The position numbers and the translations under genes were made by a program. A stretch of 64,000 nucleotides of DNA from Ylistrum balloti (taxonomy: Eukaryota): positions 620,001-684,000 of the forward strand of contig NW_026781968.1 in the NCBI RefSeq assembly GCF_031769215.1, given 5' to 3'. Every line of letters starts with the position of its first letter. Positions within the stretch are counted from its first letter, which is position 1. Of the stretch, positions 21,101 to 61,605 are shown in pieces. The notes under the pieces are model-generated. The model was not told where the DNA came from and searched no databases. It saw only the letters and a program-made list of their open reading frames with translations.

Positions 21101-24100
21101 ATGCAAAGTGTTTATACATTATGTCTCCCAACAAATCTGACAAAGTTTACAAATTTCCATTTGATCGCATATTTACAGATCTTATTTAAGTCTCACCTCA
21201 GTCATACTTCTTTTAACATTCTGTTTCAATATAAAATCACTGAAATTATTCTCCTTGTCTATCATTGGATTTAAATCATATTGGGTCATAATTACAGCTA
21301 CAGAATTTTAATATAATGATTAGTACTTTTAGCTTGTCTGGTGAATCTTGACTGATTTAAAAAAAATATCAAAACAAATATTCATGATGTCTACAACTGT
21401 CATAGATAATTGTCAAGAACAACATAAAATACCAACAGGTTAACATAATCATAATCCAAACTTTAAATCAATAAAACTAGTTCAAAATTTAAACAAAAGA
21501 AAGATTTACATGAAAATATCGGCAAAAAATCTCAAAGGATGTTAAGACCAGGTATTCTGGAAGAGTAAGCATCTTCTGCATCAACGACGATACACACAAA
21601 AGCTATGAATTGATTTTTTCCTGGTTTATGTCATTGTCTGTTGATAATAATGTTTGTATGATTTATCCATTTAAAATAAAGCTAGGAATAAGGCTAATCG
21701 ACATCTATTTCTGATTCACATTGATCAAGACGTGGATGCATCCTGGATTTTTGTTATTTTGATATATCTAAGACTTTATTATGGTATTTTGTAGAATACT
21801 ACAAGAATCCAAAGAACAGCAAGGCAGTGTCTGAGTGGCATGAACTTAAGAAAACTGTTTCAGTGGAGAAGAGAAGTACAGTCAAGAGTAACACAGACAT
21901 TAAGTTTCATCTGGCATCCCTCCATGAACACAGGACAATTTTTACATATATCCTTATTGCAGTTAGTAATGTTTTGCTTTACACACACTTTATATGTGTT
22001 TGGTCACTTATTTGGGATGTGAGAAATGCAGCAAGACAAGGGTAGGTGGATCTTTAGACTCTCATTATAACTGCTATATTATATCATATTACAGTATGTC
22101 ACTTGCAAGATGAAGATTTCTACCAGCTTATCTTATCATCATATATATCAAATATTCTGTTCCTTTGTGCAATACTAGACCAGTTTGATGCTTGTTAGAT
22201 TGCCTGTTGATTCAGCTGTTGTATACCTTATTCTTGAGAATGTGACATTTCTTATTCAGATTGACCAACATTTATATGGTGGGTGTCCTCGATGAAACAG
22301 AAGATGCTAACTCTTGGATTTTAGTTTCTCTGTAGATTTTGGGAAAATATATCACTTTTTCACTAACTCTGAATGATAGAGCAGTAATATTCTTGATACA
22401 TCATTGTAATTGGGATAATTGATTAAATCTTCTTTTGTTTGCCACCTAGATATTGAATTTCTCACTTTGTGCATCTCATGTTTTTATATTATTTATTCAG
22501 TCAAGTACAACCTGATTGTCACATCCTGTGATTGGCTATCAAAATATATGAAAACAAGAGAATGTTCAAATCAATATAGGACAGAAAAATGTACCATTCT
22601 TTTCCTTTGACTTGCACAGATGCAACTGGTGTCAGTGATTGTGACATGCATACTTGGCAAGCTGACATACATAGGGTTAGAACCAAAGTTGGAGCTAATG
22701 ACGGGAGTAAAGACATTTATGGGCACAGAGATGGTCCACAAATGGATTCCACCAAATGTGTGGATTGGGCCCTCTGAGAAATATCTAATCAGTAAGATAC
22801 CATACCACTCTGAATATGATAACTTCTGACTTCTGTTTCCAGTCGTAGTTAAAATTTTTTGAAAACAATTTAAATCCAAAATATCCTTAATCCCTCTGAT
22901 GATAAATCATTTGCAAGATTTTTCAGTTTAAAAATGTTCAGCTGAGTTTTCTCAAATGGTTGTTACTTTGTTTGTTTGTAAATATTAAGAATATATCTGA
23001 TTATTGAACACCATGCAATTTAGTGAGTCACTATTTCTGTTTTATTTTTTTTAACTCATACATGTACAGGTTATTGACTTTAAAGATAAAAAGGAGTAAT
23101 ACTGCATTGATAATGGAGAAACTAAAAAAAAAAAAAAAAAACAATATGTGTTTCTATGTACCCAGACATATTTTAGTTTCTGTGTTGAAATTGTTCTTGC
23201 TTTTATTTCTATGGTTGGAAAAAATTTACATGCAATGCATATTTGAACATGTATAGGTATTGGAGCTCTGTACGCCCCTTGCATGAGAGAAGACTATGGT
23301 ATCCAGATAGATCTGAGTAAAAAAGGCTATAAGAAAACCAGCATACTTGGCTGTTGTGAGGTGGCCAGCAGAAATGTGGCAGGAACTACAACTCAGTCAG
23401 AGTGTGTAAACATCACTAACGGTATGTAAACCTAAATTTATGGAAATAACTTGGTTTTGCAATCGTTAAAAGACTTGAAATTGTTACCTTTTGGGGTATT
23501 GTATATATCTATCTCGACATCAGATTATGATCCCATTTATAGCTGGACAGATACTCAGACTACTTTTCCAAACACAAAATCAACTTTTATGATTAATTAC
23601 ATAACTTGATTATTAGATTATAATATTTAAATTGAACATGTTGTTCATCTGTTAAACATTTTTTGAATAATTTGAATGGTATCCTGATAGGGAAGGAGAA
23701 ACATGGTCGTAATATTTTGTTAATGTACATATCTGGCAGCACAGTGAACCAAAAATATTTTCTCTTACTAAAGTTAAATGATACTGATAAGGTGTTCTGT
23801 TTTATATTCTCAAGATCTGTTACATGTATCTTCTTTTGAATAACTGTGTTACCCCTCTATGTTGTACTATCCTTATGTTATACAAAAGACCAGCAACAAC
23901 TGTTCTCAAGTACAAATGTTGAGTATTAACACAAGTTACAACAATGATAACATGTATGGCCTGAGTATCGAGCTTAACAAGTTACTCCTTCCATGGCCAC
24001 ACCAGGACTGACTCTATTTGCTGTGATCTTACAGTTTATCCTAAAGTAATTACAATCTAATTCTGATAGGGAAAGTGTCTTCTACTGATCTACAATTAAA

Positions 24101-26822
24101 CCGTGAACAGTTAATGCCTCAAAGGTGGAGAGCATGTCCAGCCAATGTTTCACGGCATGATTCTGACACTAAGGTGACCGCAATTAAACTATCTGTCTGA
24201 TAAGCCAGCCGGTCACATTTAACACAAATTATGTTCTACACTTGAGTGACAAATTTCACTATTAACAAATGGGATACATTTCTTTAGAGATTCAATGCAC
24301 GTCAGGTAATCTATGTCACAAGGCCTTCAAATACCTATGTTTATTACATTTCAATTCAAAATTTTATCAATGTTGCCTTATCTAAAATTAAGATTCAGAA
24401 AATAGTCAAATATTTTCATATCAATAAATGATCTCTTATATACATTGATTAAATTGTGGATTAAGAGTGCCTTCAAACTCTTCGAAAAGAAATTTCCCTA
24501 GGAAATTGATGATTTTACAGTATAAGAGTATTCACTGTTTCAGGAGTAGGAGAGTGGAGAGAAGGTGTTGTGTGTAGTGAGCGTCCATCAGGACAGAACT
24601 CCGTTGGTCATGTATTGAAACCTTGCTGTACAGGACTCCAAGGAGAGTGTCAGCTGTTGTCACACAAACATTGCCAGTTTCTGGAGGGAAGCTTTCATGT
24701 CAATGGGCATGAGCATTGCAGCCAAGTATAAAAACAGTTGTTGAATCAAACTTTCATGCACAAGAAATTATGTCTAGACATTGTTTGTTTTGTTGATTTC
24801 TTGATTGCTTAATTTGAATGTTGATACGTAAAGGTTTGTGTCAAATGGATATTAAAGAATTAACAGTATCCTTAGTCTGTACACAAAAAACAATCTTAGA
24901 CTTCTTGAAATAAATTACGTCAAAATAAAAAAAGAAGGGAAAATGATATATGTGGATCTGCCAGAAGGGAAATAACACCTTTTGATACAAATTTCAAACC
25001 ACACAGTTTCCTATTGCTGACTCTCTGTTCATTTTTTCCTCATTAATTTCTGGTTGGTCTTGTCAATATCTAGGTGGATTTGTCCTGATACTATATCCAG
25101 GATATGACATGTCATTAAGAATTAGCATGACCTTTAATTGACTCCATTGACTGTATAACACATTTGGGTAATGTTGAATATTTTAAGCTGGAGAGAAAAC
25201 ACTGAACAAACAAAGTATTATGGTTCTCTCTTTACTATTTGATCACTACAATAACTGCTGAAATTCATTTAAAATTTGTACTAAAATCATGTGAAACCAT
25301 TAACATCTTGTCAAAAACTAGAAATTAATATTTCTAATGTAAACTTTTGTTTATTGGTATATTTTTTAACATAGGATCCCATTGTTTTGCTTCCTGTATG
25401 TTCAAGGTAAATTGTTTGAGCTCAGTGTGTGGGATGGGAGGATTTGAGCCTGACCACACACACCCATGGCTTCCAAGAGACCCTATCCAGTGGTGGAGAT
25501 TGCCTCTGTCTTTAGTCTATCACCATGGGCTGATTCATGCCATCCTTGTAAGCCTTGCTCAGATTCTTCTATTTAGGAAGATCGAACAGACACTTGGCTG
25601 GCTTCGACTCATCATTGTATATCTTATGACGGGTTTAGGTGGGCTGCTGGTGAGTTAAATTGTATAATGGTCAGAACATTTAAGTAAGCATTATCTGTTG
25701 ACTAAAATTTGGTTTTACCACTAGCCAGATAATAATATTGAATAAATATTTTTATCAGGGACTTCCTGAATAGATAGAACTGACCACAGTGGACTTTAGC
25801 TGTAGTTTATCTAATCATCTGTGTAAACTTTCATGAGAAGGTCAGATTCCTTACCTTAATCTGAATTGTCTCTATATATTGATACCAGGTCACTGCTTTA
25901 ATTGTGGTGTGGTTTAGAACAACGGTTGTTGGTATATTTATCTATTTCATAAACGAACATTGGTGATAATATCAATATCTCCGGACATTTAGGGCAGATG
26001 ATTAGACAAGTGTTATGCATCTTACAGAAATCCACTGTCCTCAATTACTAATATATTCAATGCATCATTTATTAATAAAATACCTCAATCATTAATGATA
26101 TATGCTTAATCTACTGTAAGTTTTAAAGTAAGGTTTTGTATCCAGAAACACAACAAATGGTACAACAATAATCAGAATATGTCCTTAATCTGCTGTAAGT
26201 TGTAAGGTTTTGTATCCAGAAACACAACAATTGTAACAATAATACTTACAATACATCCGTGGATGTATTTTTATTTTACTTCCTTGTAAATCTTCCTTTA
26301 CTGAAATTTAAATGAAAATTTTATGAAATGTCAACTACAAAATGAAGTTTTGAATTTGCCAGTTCTGTCTTCCTGTTTCAGACTGCTGCTATATTCAGTC
26401 CCTATATGCCACATGTAGGTGGTACATCGACTGTGTTTGGGATGGCTGGGTTAATCACTGCAGAACTTGTACACTACTGGCACCTTGTCCAAAAACCTGC
26501 TGTGGAGCTGACAAAGATTTTTTTACTTTTAGTCATCTTCCTTATGTGTGGCACTCTCCCATACATTGACAATTACAGCATTGTGTCTGGATTCCTCTTA
26601 GGTTTCTTCTGCTCTGTCTTCTTTCTTCCTTTCATGTCCTTCAGACAGCAACAGAAACATTGCCGAATCCTCCTCCTTTGTCTTGGTGGACCCGTCATAT
26701 TTCTGGTGTATTTTGTTCTGTTTTATGTTTTCTATAGAGTACAAACATTAGAAGAATGCTCAGGATGTAAACTGTTTAACTGTGTGCCATACACAAAAGC
26801 AATGTGTGATAACTTATTGTGA
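15113..26822 (+). CDS. divergent inactive rhomboid (iRhom/RHBDF-like pseudoprotease), about 950 aa
   Basis: In-frame exons: 14967-15163 (first in-frame ATG 15113), 18676-19929, 20688-20765, 20973-21081, 21795-21961, 22620-22791, 23257-23421, 24544-24725, 25407-25649, 26382-26822; all phases are compatible. iRhom-like motifs: HRTIFTYIL (cf. HRPYFTYWL), NVWIGPS..LISIGALYAPCMR (cf. NFWVGPS..LIHLGAKFSPCIR), GCC, PCCTGLQGECQLLSHKHCQFLEGSFH (cf. [26 protein letters not shown]), SQVNCLSSVCG, WRL, GTLPYIDN, LPFMSF, CVPYTKAMC. The exact start codon is uncertain. Confidence 0.9.
15228..15425. repeat. 31-bp tandem repeat, about 6 copies
   Basis: Unit ATCAATATTAGATATAAAATTGTAACTTTAC, period 31 (15241 and 15272), decaying to the right. 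Confidence 0.9.
15609..17804. repeat. 29-bp intronic minisatellite, about 75 copies
   Basis: Consensus AATAACAAACCTATAGACTAAACAG(T/G)GTT repeated head to tail, with recurring point variants and a few 27-bp units. Confidence 0.98.
21540..21600 (-). mobile_element. Nin-domain-type SINE fragment (reverse copy)
   Basis: AGGTATTCTGGAAGAGTAAGCATCTTCTGCATC is the reverse complement of the GATGCTTACTCTTCC..GCACCT core I recall from molluscan Nin-domain SINEs, and it is complementary to the copy at about 22290. Confidence 0.5.
22170..22400 (+). mobile_element. Nin-domain-type SINE copy
   Basis: Contains GGGTGTCCTCGATGAAACAGAAGATGCTAACTCTTGG. The upstream segment TTGCCTGTTG..TTGTATACCTT..GAATGTGACATT..GATTGACCAA recurs at about 54797-54870. 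Confidence 0.55.
26107..26245. repeat. short intronic tandem duplication (2 copies, period about 79 bp)
   Basis: TAATCT(A/G)CTGTAAGTT..GTAAGGTTTTGTATCCAGAAACACAACAA..ACAATAAT occurs twice. Confidence 0.8.
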
Positions 26823-31399: not shown

Positions 31400-31653
31400 G
31401 GGGAAACCCTGATACATATTTCGACGTGACTAAGGCTGCTGACATCCGAAAACCAGAACCACATCGGTAATGATGCTATATATACTAATACTGTTCAGGT
31501 CGTTTTTGATTGGTCTTTCTCAAACAGAAGCATAACCAACTCTTTAGAAGAGTTTCCAAACGTTTTGTATGTATTCTAGGGTTTCTGCAAGACAAGATTT
31601 TCATGAAACAGAGAATCGAAAATAATCGGTTTCCAAAGTTACTGGTATATAAA
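31400..31653 (+). promoter_or_regulatory. putative promoter of helical cytokine gene 1
   Basis: TATATAAA at 31646-31653, about 90 bp before the ATG, and a kappaB-like GGGGAAACCC at 31400-31409. Motif match only. Confidence 0.45.
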
Positions 31654-31741: not shown

Positions 31742-33767
31742 ATGAAGCAAGGTAAGATATCATTTAAAAGTAACATGTGTATATTAACATATGTAGATAT
31801 ACTGGATACAAATACCACTTGATATCAAGCGAACAACTATATGAAAACTGGATTGTACGTAAACATTAATATTTATTTGAACATTTAATAATGCTAAGCA
31901 AATAAAACACTCACATTTTCTACAAAGAGTTAGTGGATATAGTACAGTGTATAATTATGACGAAACAATACCCTAGTATTACTTCATTTTTTGTTACATG
32001 ATATTATCAATGTTCTCTCTTTTTTATTCTCCGCTGCATTTTATGGACTATCTGCCATTTTGCAAATTTCCTATCTGATTTTTGGAGAAGTTGTAACTGT
32101 TTTTAACATAATCGTCAAAGCTCGCTTCGTAATAAATATATTGTCTTTGAAATTGACTACATAACCCATCAGCTATTTTTTCCTATTTTCTGTTACAGTA
32201 AGTGCTCTCAGTTATTTACTCGTCATTGTCTCCTTCCTGGTCTGTCTTCTCTCGCTCGTAGTGGAGACAGCACCTACCCCTGGATACACGGGGGTATGGA
32301 GAAATCCTTGCGAAGACACCACACCTTCTTTTGAACCCTACAATACAACAAACCAAGAGAAATCAATGGTTTTAAGCGATATCAATACCAATCTCAATGA
32401 AGCAGAAAACATAGCAACCGACATTAAGAATGAATATGTAAGTTTAGTTATACCTGTACGTTGTAGATGTAACATAGTATTTCTCGCTTTAATCTGAGAC
32501 AAATTCATACAAGCTATCAATATGTTTCGGCGATACTTAATTTGTGGATCATTGGTCATCCTTTATAGTAAAGACATCACATAGTAATCTTCCAGAGTCA
32601 TCTGTAATATTCTACAGTGTATATACTTGCTATGGTATGTTATATATGACTTGCTATTTCACAGTATGAAACAAGGCTAATGACTATGTGAAAAATATAA
32701 TCTTGAACGTTTAACATATTGATCTACATAATACAGTACATTTTATAATATCTTGGGTACTTATGGATATAACATTCGGTTTCAGAGATTGCATCGTGTT
32801 GCAAGTCAAGTATCTAACGAGACATGTGTGTCCAACTTTGAGGATAATCTAGACAATATATACTTACACGTTCCCGGATTTCCGGATCTAAGCACGTATT
32901 TCGTTGGTTCCGACGCCATCGCTATCTGCGCAAATGTAAGTGTTCTTCTTCTATTACCAATGCTATGTTTACCAATAGGTTTGATTTGAACACAGTATCT
33001 TTCTATATGTAGAAATCAAACACCATCAGAATATCATAAAGATTTTTTGTTATTGTGATGTGTTTGCTTTTTTAAAAAATTCCATTTCGTGGAAGTATGC
33101 ATGTCGGTTTAACATGAAAAATAAATTATGTACCCTAACCAAGAAATTTCATTTTTGTTTTTATCAATGCTCATACATTTCTTCATTAATCGTATTTAAA
33201 GGGATTCGGTTTTAATCTTCAAAAGTAGTTTTCGATATGTTTCGCTAATATGGCGGCTTTGAGTTAAGGTAAATAAGGCATTTTCCCATGAATCATGCTT
33301 CCATTATTAGATGTGTTCGACTACCATGCTTGCTTTTTAAATCCTAGTCCATTGTTGTTTGGAAGTTAAATTTGTGAACAAATTACAGCAGTGAATAAAC
33401 TATATTATATAATTATATATTGTTGTTACAGATTTCTGCGGCATTGCTACATGATTACAAAAACCTGGTTCGTGTTATGATTTACCTAGAAGAAACCATC
33501 CAGGAAGAACATGATGAAAGCTATGAACAACAGTTGAAGAATCTACATGATGCGATCAAGGGGGTCATGTGTAAATTTCACGTGCTTGAGCAGCCCTGCG
33601 GCCTGGAAGAGCAAGGTCTAAATGTTACCGACATTATCAAACAATACAAAGTATCCCGTCAAAATGAGCGTGATTACCTGTTGATTAGAGATACAATCAT
33701 ACTTATGCGTGGCCTTCATAAAAGGTACAATACATGTAATGCATTGTATAGTAAAACCTCCGGATAA
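31742..33767 (+). CDS. secreted long-chain four-helix cytokine-like protein 1 (IL-6/LIF/Unpaired-like), 244 aa
   Basis: Exons 31742-31751, 32199-32437, 32786-32935, 33432-33767 (phases 1,0,0) with strong splice sites. Signal peptide MKQVSALSYLLVIVSFLVCLLSLVVETA; WRNPC motif; four amphipathic segments (SMVLSDINTNLNEAENIATDIKNEY; AALLHDYKNLVRVMIYLEETIQEE; YEQQLKNLHDAIKGVMCKF; ERDYLLIRDTIILMRGLHKRY). The gene model is solid; the family call is inference. Confidence 0.8.
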
Positions 33768-35348
33768 TTCTAGTCATCACACATTTGTCTCCTAGTTTGA
33801 AACACAAAGCATAAATTGACGTTACCTTGTTTGTATCATTTAGAATGCCAGAACTTTGTTTAAAGTGTTCATTGTATGAATGATGCCAAGTTTTGTATAG
33901 AAATGAATAGCAGTAAGACTGTCAGCTGTTCGCATAAGTCACAATTATCAGTTCAGGAAGTACCACTATACCTTGAAACATGTATGCTATTGTAATGATC
34001 AAGTTACACATCAGTATTTGTGACTGCTGTTTCTGTTTTTTTGTTTTGTTTTTTGTTTTTTATTTGTTAAATATTGTATATATATATATATATATTTGTG
34101 TACTTTACCTGTTTGGACAACTAATATACAAGATATTTGCTTGTTTCCCATAAAAAGTTTCTTCATAATAACCGTTATCAGTATTACTACATACAATGAC
34201 GTGCGCTGTTGGCTAGGATATCATGCTTCATTACTTGGAACGAAAATATTTTGATATTATATATATGTGTGTACGTGAGTGTATTACATATACATAACAT
34301 GTATGTAAGTGGAACAACGTCACAGTATTGACTGTCTTAAGGTTATGGACCATTTGTTCATAGAAAATGTACGATTATATTAATCAATGATGGTTTTTAA
34401 TTTGTTTGTATTTTTATAATGGACATTATTGTTATGTTGGTAATATTTTTCTATTATGATCGTATAATATTGCAAGTTTGTTTTTATTTCAATAAGTGTA
34501 TATGTATTTTTATATCCCTTTTTACTGATTGGTTATATTGACTTCTCAATACGATTGTAAATGAAACTTAGCTTGATTTTTGAAAGAGGTTTTTATGTTT
34601 ATATAAATAAAGCAATTTATTACCAGTTTCTCTCTCGATTATATTTTCCTGGTATGTACTTTTATTCCCGATGTTAATAAATCATCGGATTAAGCAGTCA
34701 ATAGAACCCCACTGCAATAACAACAAATCGATATGTTTATCGTTGTTACGTAAATGAGTGCATGGACGATCCATTACATGTTTTGCACGTGGCGCAACTG
34801 TCGCACGTGCGACAGACAGACAGTCGACAGTGGTGACACATACATGTGTCTGTGTTCGCCTAGCGTTCGATAACTGAATTTGTAAATATCCAAGCTTGCC
34901 AGCCTAACAAATGTGATATTTTCAGTGTGCTAGCTTCAGCGTCCTCTTGCCAGTGAGTCAGTGAGTACAGAATTTGATGAGACAATACGTACAAAAATGA
35001 AATGCCAAAAACCAGTTGTCCTTAACCGAGGTTGTTTTCTGTCAAGATTTTCACTTGGTTTTCCACAATTTAGCCAATAGAATTCTACGCGTGGAAGTTG
35101 CTGCTATTCCACATCAAGCTCGATTCCAAGATAAACATTTTATCCCTTCCAAGTCTTGCATTTCTATTCAAGTATTTTCAAAGATATCCTTATTTCACTC
35201 AATATGTGCAACAAGAGGTCATATATATTCTATTTAGATTTAGATACGTAGTGAACCGCGTGAACGGATGTATTTACTTTGAAGATGATTCTAGGCATGG
35301 CCTCGAGTATAATGATAAATATTATGTAAGAATGAAGATTATTCCATA

Positions 35349-59227: not shown

Positions 59228-61369
59228 TTATCGAACCTGGAGTCGCATAACTTTTGTAAAGTCAAGTATATAGCTGAGAGCTGCTTCCGTTTCGAACATT
59301 TGTAGCATTATGTTATACATAGTTCCGAGTACATAGAATACTCGGTATTTCGAATAAAATCGGACCTTTTCGGGGTTCATCCTTTCTGGTGTCTGCTGAC
59401 TAATCTTTGCACCGTAGTACATTTTTGCCTGTAAATAAACCAAAGGAAACATGTAATTAAAATAATTAATATCGCTGTTTGATTTAATTACCCTTATTTG
59501 TCTTATCACTGATGAAAATTTATTTAAAACATTCACCAGAGTGAAAGTATCGGTCAAACTCTGTGATCTCTGTATTTCTTTTATAATCAAAAATATGTTA
59601 TTTCTATACTGATTTCATCATATACAGCAATGTAAAAGTCACGGCCCTACTGTAAAGCATCTCTTTACCACCAACATGGAGTGTCTATACATACATGCAG
59701 TTACTCCTCAAGATAATAATTCTATTACTTTAAGTAAGCTTATATTTAACATTTTAAATAACAGTTTATTTTCTTGAATATCTTTGTTTAAAAAAATTAA
59801 TAAATAAAAACAAGAATGAACACACAATCGAAACCCCAAATTAAATGATTGCTTTGATAGAAGACATACAACATTTGATAGAATTCCACTGTATACAGTA
59901 TAGATACGCTAATCGTTGTCGAGAGTTTACCTAGTATATCATAATACCGCTAGATGTCCAGACCAATCTAGTACAGTTAAATATATACTCTGTATTTCGA
60001 CTGGTGTTAATTCATTTGTGTTCATCCTGTTATAGACCCACCTCCTTTTCCAGTCCAAGGATGAGCTCGTCCAACTGGGGAACAATGACGCCATTCAAGG
60101 AACAATACAGGGAGGACCCCAAAGTGCAGTCGACGTCACAGACGGCCTCGCTTCCACAAATATGTCGTTTTTCAATAGCTAGAAGGTCAGTCAGGTTTCC
60201 CCAATGGTAACGAAGTACTTGGATGACGTCAATAAGCAATTTCTATAACATTAAATGAACATCGTATGTGTGTATATATAGCGAGAGACAGACATAAGTT
60301 AGCAGGAACTCCCATGTCAACTCAACCGTAAAAAACAAACAAGAAATATTTGTAGACTTGTCACAGTTATCAATATGTACTAAATATATATTATACTTAA
60401 ATATTTCTTTAAAGAATACATTAATGATAAACATGAGTATGGACTCATAATTGATTATAACAAAATTCACAAAGAAATAAATCATTTTTAATTCAGTGAT
60501 ATACTGATGTCCGATTCATGCTTCTTGCTTATACTATACTTCTGATTAGGAAACTAATACGTGATGGAATATCTGAAATGTATTTTCTTCGTTGTAATTT
60601 TTATGCATTTTGACACAATGGTTAGAAAAAGATAAAATTATTCAAAATACCTTGTTAAACCTTTTCTGCTTCTTGATCATCATGACTTCGTTTGATGGTG
60701 ACCGGATGAAATCTCGTACATTCCAGTTATTAACAAGATTAAACGAGAAGTCTAAGCAATCGTCTGGTATCACGTCATTATTATCTTTACACTGAAAAAC
60801 ATAAATAATACGTGAGTGTTAAAGTTGTATAAAATGTTGAAATAAGTAAATAACTGAAGGAAAATTCTATGATACTCCTTCAAATTCATTCGTTATTTGT
60901 AATTCTCAAAAGTTAGAATTAAAATGCTACTTACATGATTTAATACAAGACGTTCCAGAGAATTTCCAAGAAATTTCACTAGAGGTATTGCCGTTTTGGA
61001 TACACTTTTCCAGAATCGGAAATGCAAGGATGCCGACCCTCCCAACCTAAGGGAGGACAATTGAGACCTTCCATCCGTGTAAGAATTTTCTGATGACACC
61101 ATATCTGAATTTAACGCCGTATTAGTGTATGACTTGGGTGATGGAATGGACAATCTCTGATCTGTATCAACTTCTGTGTTTGGTTGGATTTCCATAACGG
61201 ACAACTGTGAAATTCTGTCTGTATTCTCATCTCGTGTGCTTGCGGTTGTCTCGGAGAAATTTGGTGGAAAATTGTACTTGTCTTCTGTATTCTTCTTTAT
61301 AATTGGTATCGAGAATCCTGATGCTACCAGAAGCAACTCAACAACCAACTCGATTATCAAAATATTCAT
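59228..61369 (-). CDS. secreted long-chain four-helix cytokine-like protein 2 (LIF/CNTF/CLCF1-like motifs), 325 aa
   Basis: Exons 61369-60935 (acceptor at 61375), 60791-60651, 60242-60042, 59428-59228, all phase 0 and all open. Signal peptide MNILIIELVVELLLVASGFS; Ser/Thr-rich pro-segment; helix-like segments FWKSVSKTAIPLVKFLGNSLERLVLNH, KLLIDVIQVLRYHWGNLTDLLAIEK, VIVPQLDELILGLEKEAKMYY, RFYSKYRVFYVLGTMYNIMLQMF (FxxK motif). The gene model is solid; the family call is inference. Confidence 0.8.
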
Positions 61370-61449: not shown

Positions 61450-61480
<31 letters not shown>

Positions 61481-61605
61481 AAAAAAGAAAGGGAGAAAAA
61501 AGGAAAAAGAAAGGAAAAAAGAATGATGTAGAAGTAAAGAAAGAATGGAAGGAAAAATAAAAAAGAAAGAAAAGGGGAAAAAGGGAAGGAAAAAGAAAGA
61601 AAGCA
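61450..61605. repeat. polypurine (GAAA)n-type low-complexity tract in intron 1 of cytokine-like gene 2
   Basis: About 150 bp almost entirely A/G on the plus strand, including a run of GAAA units. Confidence 0.9.

Follow-up and report, generated by a model that had tools for sequence, protein, structure and literature searches.

A conserved scallop gene, LOC132544064, encodes a putative secreted protein with a predicted long-chain helical-cytokine fold

The gene LOC132544064 lies on the plus strand at positions 31742–33767 of the window, a stretch of 64,000 nucleotides from contig JAUZWB010001244.1 of the Ylistrum balloti (saucer scallop) assembly GCA_031769215.1. We find it to be an intact, constrained gene whose product begins with a secretory signal and is predicted to fold as a long-chain class I helical cytokine, and we hold with moderate confidence that the protein is secreted and signals as such. 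The helical-cytokine reading, put forward in a first-pass annotation of the window, is supported at the level of the predicted fold; the results from structure comparison and from a protein language model all point the same way, to helical cytokines.

AlphaFold2, run on the mature protein with a family alignment of seven sequences, gave a model with a mean predicted local distance difference test (pLDDT) score of 77 and a predicted template modelling (pTM) score of 0.80. In full-length numbering, the four helices of the model span residues 55–91 (A), 127–158 (B), 162–185 (C) and 210–243 (D); the A-B loop has ~35 residues and carries two short helices, the C-D loop has ~24 residues and carries one short helix, and the turn between helices B and C has three residues. 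Two long crossover loops and a tight B-C turn are the order that the up-up-down-down topology of class I and II cytokines requires (PMC7378365), and the fold is predicted to be a long-chain up-up-down-down four-helix bundle. IL-6 itself has this topology, long loops and, within its C-D loop, a short helix (PMC7378365). Four amphipathic helices with long A-B and C-D loops had been proposed from the sequence. The helices and loops are all found in the model, whereas the helical hydrophobic moment, a weak metric for long supercoiled helices, exceeds that of shuffled sequences only for helix B (p 0.014) and helix C (p 0.029), and not for helices A and D. The segment QLKNLHDAIKGVM, which had been assigned to helix C, does lie in the predicted helix C.

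In our structural comparisons, the match of this model is specific to the crossover-loop topology of cytokines, and the gp130 family is the closest in shape. The exhaustive comparison by VIA-align with 48,161 solved chains matched the model to IL-11 at Z 16.2 (root-mean-square deviation (rmsd) of 2.4 Å over 157 residues), CLCF1 at Z 15.5, IL-27p28 at Z 15.1, IL-6 and placental lactogen both at Z 13.8, CNTF at Z 13.7, IL-23p19 at Z 13.1, LIF at Z 12.7, OSM at Z 12.5, viral IL-6 at Z 12.3, growth hormone (GH) at Z 11.7 and leptin at Z 10.8; helical cytokines fill rows 1–29 without exception, and the highest-ranking unrelated protein has Z 7.4. A paralogue from Argopecten (39% identity), folded as a semi-independent repeat, also reached a pTM of 0.80 in AlphaFold2 and matched IL-11 (Z 17.8), IL-6 (Z 16.8), CLCF1 (Z 16.2), placental lactogen (Z 15.2), CNTF (Z 14.7) and LIF (Z 14.4). 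The first 27 to 29 rows are cytokines in both comparisons, and no ordinary bundle (Dps, ferritin or designed) exceeds Z 8. In VIA-align, a Z of ~14 is within reach of mostly helical models without proven kinship; the weight of the comparison lies in the clean separation of cytokines from other helical bundles and in full-length coverage in sequence order. Foldseek against the PDB returned placental lactogen, prolactin, CLCF1, IL-27, IL-6, GH, CNTF, G-CSF and OSM in its top rows, at a probability of 0.9–1.0 and with template modelling (TM) scores, normalized by target, of 0.5–0.7. The fold had been named beforehand as the point on which the cytokine reading would stand or fall; what we obtained is an up-up-down-down bundle, with IL-6/gp130 cytokines and prolactin/GH-type hormones as its best matches.

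The language model leads to the same families. In the ESM Atlas, the full protein scored 0.95 to clusters that carry Hormone_1, IL6 and LIF_OSM, a level that shuffled proteins reach ~1 time in 100 by the tool's own figure; exon 4 alone retrieved cardiotrophin-2-like, CNTF, IL-11, LIF/OSM, IL-6/G-CSF, IL-27a and leptin clusters, the best of them at 0.91. The single-sequence model of the Atlas has a pTM of 0.72, and its best structural neighbour is a mostly molluscan cluster of 114 hypothetical proteins of ~229 residues (TM 0.66/0.70 over 183 residues), which has a feature score of 0.95 and in which 11% of the members match Pfam IL6. The cluster probably represents a broader family of molluscan proteins with this predicted fold; no HMMER search from the scallop family retrieved it, and homology is not demonstrable. 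The Atlas ranks two clusters of hypothetical arthropod proteins highly as well. Unrecognised helical-cytokine-like families may be widespread in protostomes.

As a specificity control, ten vertebrate cytokine families were excluded from the language-model neighbours; this left, as the only named neighbours, three clusters of arthropod Unpaired proteins (PF15972), which score 0.88, 0.83 and 0.81. The best of these, with 187 of 256 features, falls below the tool's threshold of 0.9 for a lead. The Unpaired proteins (Upd1-3), the ligands of Domeless, resemble the scallop protein in being secreted helical JAK/STAT ligands of invertebrates that lack sequence similarity to vertebrate cytokines, and they differ from it in being much longer (~410–585 residues in the neighbouring clusters). 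The Unpaired profile PF15972 was in the library that we scanned and gave no match at E up to 10. Two sequence motifs, W-x-N-P-C and RDxxxxRD, had been taken to recall Unpaired-like ligands. The first is borne out in part: the N-terminal family motif is W-R-x-P-C, in which the Asn is not conserved (it is Tyr in the paralogue subfamily), and RDxxxxRD is present as RDYLLIRD at residues 213–220, with four residues invariant. Their likeness to Unpaired found no support beyond the sub-threshold language-model similarity of 0.88. An alignment of helix C with LIF, made by eye, fares no better, as structural superposition gives an identity of only 10–13% and no sequence method links the protein to LIF or to another family. 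Neither the LIF alignment nor the Unpaired motifs add measurable weight.

The same fold could belong to an endocrine, growth or metabolic hormone of the prolactin, GH or leptin type, which would act through a class I receptor in a developmental, reproductive or metabolic role. Prolactin, GH and placental lactogen (Hormone_1) and leptin share the long-chain fold and are strong structural matches (Z 10.8–15.2), and Pfam Hormone_1 is carried by the language-model clusters that score highest. The GH gene also has the layout of LOC132544064, in which a first coding exon of 10 bases precedes a phase-1 intron and the later introns are phase 0. However, the top Z and the lowest rmsd in both models go to members of the gp130 family (IL-11, IL-6, CLCF1 and IL-27p28), and the hormones differ from the scallop protein in giving no sequence match, in their slightly lower structural scores and in their pattern of cysteines. 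Differences of 1–2 in Z are near ties, and the fold alone thus cannot separate a hormone from an immune cytokine; we regard the hormone as an unlikely reading.

The predicted cytokine fold is encoded by a gene whose structure is well defined. Splicing of the window sequence gives four coding exons and an open frame of 735 bases for a product of 244 residues, which is letter-for-letter the RefSeq entry "uncharacterized protein LOC132544064 [Ylistrum balloti]". Since the two products are identical, the gene is already annotated, by an NCBI pipeline that built its model independently, and lacks a name or function there. All three introns are GT-AG, with the acceptor AG behind a pyrimidine tract, and their phases are 1, 0 and 0; the exon coordinates of the first-pass annotation proved exact. 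All features of the gene given below are on the plus strand. The coding part of exon 1 (31742–31751) consists of the ATG and seven further bases (M-K-Q and one base of codon 4) and is followed by the phase-1 intron. Exon 2 (32199–32437) encodes the remainder of the signal peptide (to ~32269), an N-terminal extension that includes WRNPC (32297–32311), and most of helix A (from 32351). Exon 3 (32786–32935) had been described as a 50-codon exon holding just the A-B loop. It has exactly 50 codons and encodes the conserved A-B loop, but with two helical turns on each side, those that close helix A and those that open helix B; Cys97, Cys131 and the sequons N94 and N133 belong to this exon. Exon 4 (33432–33767) encodes helix B (to 33506), helix C (33516–33587), the C-D loop, which contains a mini-helix and the conserved sequon N197, and helix D (33660–33761), near the N-terminal end of which lies RDYLLIRD (33669–33692); the stop codon TAA occupies 33765–33767. 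Intron 3 falls at a kink where helix B starts.

Residues 1–27 form the signal peptide, with a short charged start and a hydrophobic stretch of ~22 residues, as had been noted at the outset. Its cleavage is placed near T27|A28 by the −3/−1 rule and the alignment of orthologues, which would leave a mature protein of ~217 residues. The protein is probably secreted and N-glycosylated, as judged from these sequence signals, and its six conserved cysteines probably form three disulfides. A pattern scan found a candidate TATA box (TATATAA, 31646–31652) ~90 bp 5′ of the ATG, which fits a short 5′ untranslated region (UTR). The first candidate poly(A) signal after the stop codon (AATAAA, 34606–34611) lies ~0.84 kb downstream, with a second at 34676; the predicted 3′ UTR would be ~0.85 kb long if the first one serves. 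A T-rich/(TA)n simple repeat lies in the 3′ UTR region at 34023–34106, where the contigs of a second DNA data set (see below) break. The region studied has no runs of N.

Queried with exon 4, a full HMMER scan over 1.84 billion representative proteins found only three relatives of LOC132544064; word-indexed searches with the full protein and the family profile added two. All are from scallops (Pectinidae). The orthologues are those of Pecten maximus (247 residues, 58% identity) and Argopecten irradians (254 residues, 55% identity); a second subfamily, ~40% identical, is present in Mizuhopecten yessoensis and A. irradians; and two further family fragments come from raw-read assemblies. As far as sequence searches reach, the family is restricted to scallops, and it evolves fast, as cytokines do. 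A search of the window by tblastn revealed no paralogue of the gene.

The orthologues of Pecten and Argopecten match LOC132544064 exactly in exon borders and splice signals; the tiny phase-1 first coding exon is the same in Pecten and occurs as a 22-base version in Argopecten. Both annotated proteins of the second subfamily (that of Argopecten and Mizuhopecten XP_021348594.1) start within helix A. The first annotated exon of this subfamily extends upstream in frame, through a proline-rich linker, W-R-Y-P-C and a hydrophobic signal stretch, to a phase-1 AG acceptor. Because the exon codes on upstream in frame behind this acceptor, the RefSeq models of the second subfamily look N-terminally truncated, and the whole family appears to share one layout. 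A gene for a Rhomboid-domain (iRhom-like) protein of 953 residues, at ~21742–26822 on the plus strand, ends ~4.9 kb upstream of LOC132544064 on the same strand, and the same order of the two genes, a few kb apart on one strand, is found in Argopecten irradians. The shared neighbour supports orthology; we saw no evidence that this linkage has a functional meaning.

Purifying selection acts on the family across scallops. Between species, the proportion of nonsynonymous differences (pN) is 0.25–0.29 versus 0.63–0.78 for synonymous ones (pS), and the pairwise ratio of the corresponding rates (dN/dS) is ~0.2, with synonymous sites near saturation. Between orthologues, the signal peptide and helices A and C are the most variable regions (46–58% identity), and the N-terminal extension (67–74%), the A-B loop (60–69%), helix B (69%) and helix D (59–65%) are better kept; the A-B loop is thus as conserved as the helices. 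Six cysteines (41, 97, 131, 180, 189 and 235) and the sequon N197 are conserved in both subfamilies. The invariant polar residues cluster at the end of helix A (Y83, R84 and R87), in helix B (S135, D141, Y142, T155 and E158) and in the first turns of helix D (R213, D214, Y215 and D220), the last four being invariant in all seven family sequences.

A mis-predicted gene model or a decaying pseudogene would be a very improbable explanation of these data. The sole sequencing run in which we found the locus is a DNA assembly, collinear with the window through the introns, and no RNA run was found, which leaves room for a non-functional gene. In this second DNA data set, the locus differs from the window at 14 positions and by a single-base insertion at the intronic position 33270. 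The open reading frame is nonetheless intact in both DNA data sets, the canonical splice sites are identical in three species, pN lies well below pS, the six cysteines and one sequon are conserved over two subfamilies, and the NCBI pipeline arrived at the same model on its own. Six of the 14 substitutions are coding, and five of these are nonsynonymous (V4E, E42G, T67A, L185I and G227A); the exons thus carry six single-nucleotide polymorphisms in 735 bases versus eight in ~1900 bases of surrounding non-coding sequence. This exon-rich, 5:1 nonsynonymous polymorphism hints at relaxed or diversifying selection within the species, with small numbers and against a dN/dS of ~0.2 between genera.

Several results weigh against reading the intact, constrained product of LOC132544064 as a cytokine. 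All evidence on the fold is predicted, from a shallow alignment of seven sequences; two of the five AlphaFold2 models have a pLDDT of 51–55, and the A-B loop and the N-terminus are poorly defined. The Foldseek E-values are weak (0.05–1, the best being 0.05), a shape search of the ESM Atlas with the AlphaFold2 model was uninformative (TM <0.4), AlphaFold2 and the language model are not wholly independent, and the Atlas results are leads rather than proof. At the sequence level, a Pfam hmmscan, run on the exon pieces and on each of the six family members, found no cytokine family at E up to 10, the profiles IL6, LIF_OSM, CNTF, IL11, GCSF, Hormone_1 and Leptin being among those that did not match; the family profile searched against all PDB sequences gave only a chance match, to vaccinia A27 (E 0.39); sequence searches found no relative outside Pectinidae; and the protein sequence has no F-x-x-K of the LIF type anywhere. 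AU-rich elements are not enriched in the 3′ UTR, with two ATTTA versus 5.7 expected, and, as noted above, no RNA run with the locus was found.

From much the same points it could be argued that the protein, secreted, helical and specific to scallops, has a non-cytokine role (in binding or transport, in reproduction or in the extracellular matrix), and that its model owes its resemblance to convergence or to a bias of the prediction methods towards a fold that they have learnt well. No sequence homology to any family was found, and the family was found in Pectinidae only; the alignment is shallow, a minority of the AlphaFold2 models are poor, helical models can score highly in the absence of kinship, and the nonsynonymous excess of the second haplotype is compatible with relaxed or diversifying selection. 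However, the matches are specific to the crossover-loop topology, with cytokines filling the leading rows and ordinary bundles far below; two sequences with only 39% identity lead to one and the same result; the language-model features and an independent single-sequence model concur; and purifying selection acts on the gene across scallops. We judge a non-cytokine role to be improbable.

Compared with the cytokines of the IL-6/gp130 family, the scallop protein is alike in being, by prediction, a secreted protein of ~20–25 kDa with a four-helix up-up-down-down fold whose A-B and C-D loops are both long, the latter containing a short helix; the best matches in this family have a Z of 12.5–17.8 and an rmsd of 2.4–3.9 Å over 140–172 residues. 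It is unlike them in having no detectable sequence similarity (7–14% identity in superpositions), in its N-terminal extension of 27 residues with W-R-x-P-C, in its own set of six cysteines and in lacking FxxK. At the gene level, both open with a tiny first coding exon that ends in a phase-1 intron, the later introns being phase 0, whereas the scallop gene has three coding introns and none between helices C and D. This arrangement had been offered as the layout of the IL-6 family: it is present and compatible with that layout, but it is common in genes for secreted proteins, and the C-D intron is missing. Phase-0 introns between the core helices are described as a trait of the helical-cytokine family in a passage of PMC12327624 that cites Betts et al. 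2001. Of the two phase-0 introns of LOC132544064, one sits close to where helix A ends and the other where helix B begins, a pattern that is compatible with this trait and not specific to it.

Cytokines of the gp130 family have a receptor site that is made up of the end of the A-B loop and the start of helix D. In the LIFR-binding subgroup of LIF, OSM and CNTF, the FxxK motif of site III stands at the N-terminal end of helix D. Helix D of the scallop protein opens with Q-N-E-R-D-Y-L-L-I-R-D, and the invariant Tyr215 lies near a position that may be equivalent to that of FxxK. By analogy, the RDY...D patch (R213, D214, Y215 and D220) is a candidate receptor epitope. We propose that the protein would be released and fold as a disulfide-stabilised bundle; that it would then engage a class I receptor of the Domeless/gp130/IL-6R type at its cytokine-binding homology region, with the invariant patch that opens helix D and the conserved A-B loop as possible contacts; and that the receptor chains, once brought together, would activate JAK and STAT. 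The function as a JAK/STAT ligand is one that we infer from known cytokines.

Elsewhere in the window, ~25 kb from LOC132544064, a gene on the minus strand (59228–61369) encodes another secreted protein, of 325 residues, in four exons (61369–60935, 60791–60651, 60242–60042 and 59428–59228); all of its introns are phase 0, and its first exon has 145 codons. A long (GAAA)n-like purine tract lies just upstream of its start, at 61450–61600. Kinship between the two genes was considered and rejected: tblastn and hmmsearch gave no match, and the hhalign probability is 0.06%.

Molluscs have IL-6R-like receptors, JAK and STAT, and an IL-6-type ligand is not known in them (PMC13203501). The same 2026 survey found no IL-6-type ligand outside vertebrates and lists, as activators in invertebrates, only insect Unpaired and a shrimp lectin (PMC13203501); our literature searches found no described helical cytokine of a mollusc or scallop. 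The scallop family appears, on the strength of its models, to be a lineage-restricted sequence orphan with a known long-chain helical-cytokine fold, in a phylum without a known JAK-STAT ligand. Tentatively, and with more doubt than confidence, it may be proposed that this family, possibly together with the 114-member cluster, is the native lophotrochozoan ligand of Domeless/gp130/IL-6R-type receptors, a sequence-eroded descendant of a bilaterian IL-6/Unpaired ancestor. As the family is found in Pectinidae only, such descent, as against convergence, is unproven. If true, this proposal would fill the "missing ligand" gap of mollusc JAK-STAT signalling, and it bears on whether helical cytokines predate the protostome-deuterostome split. 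A concrete candidate from scallops makes the question of the lophotrochozoan JAK-STAT activator directly testable by experiment; and given that scallops are aquaculture species, a cytokine of immunity or growth would also be of practical interest.

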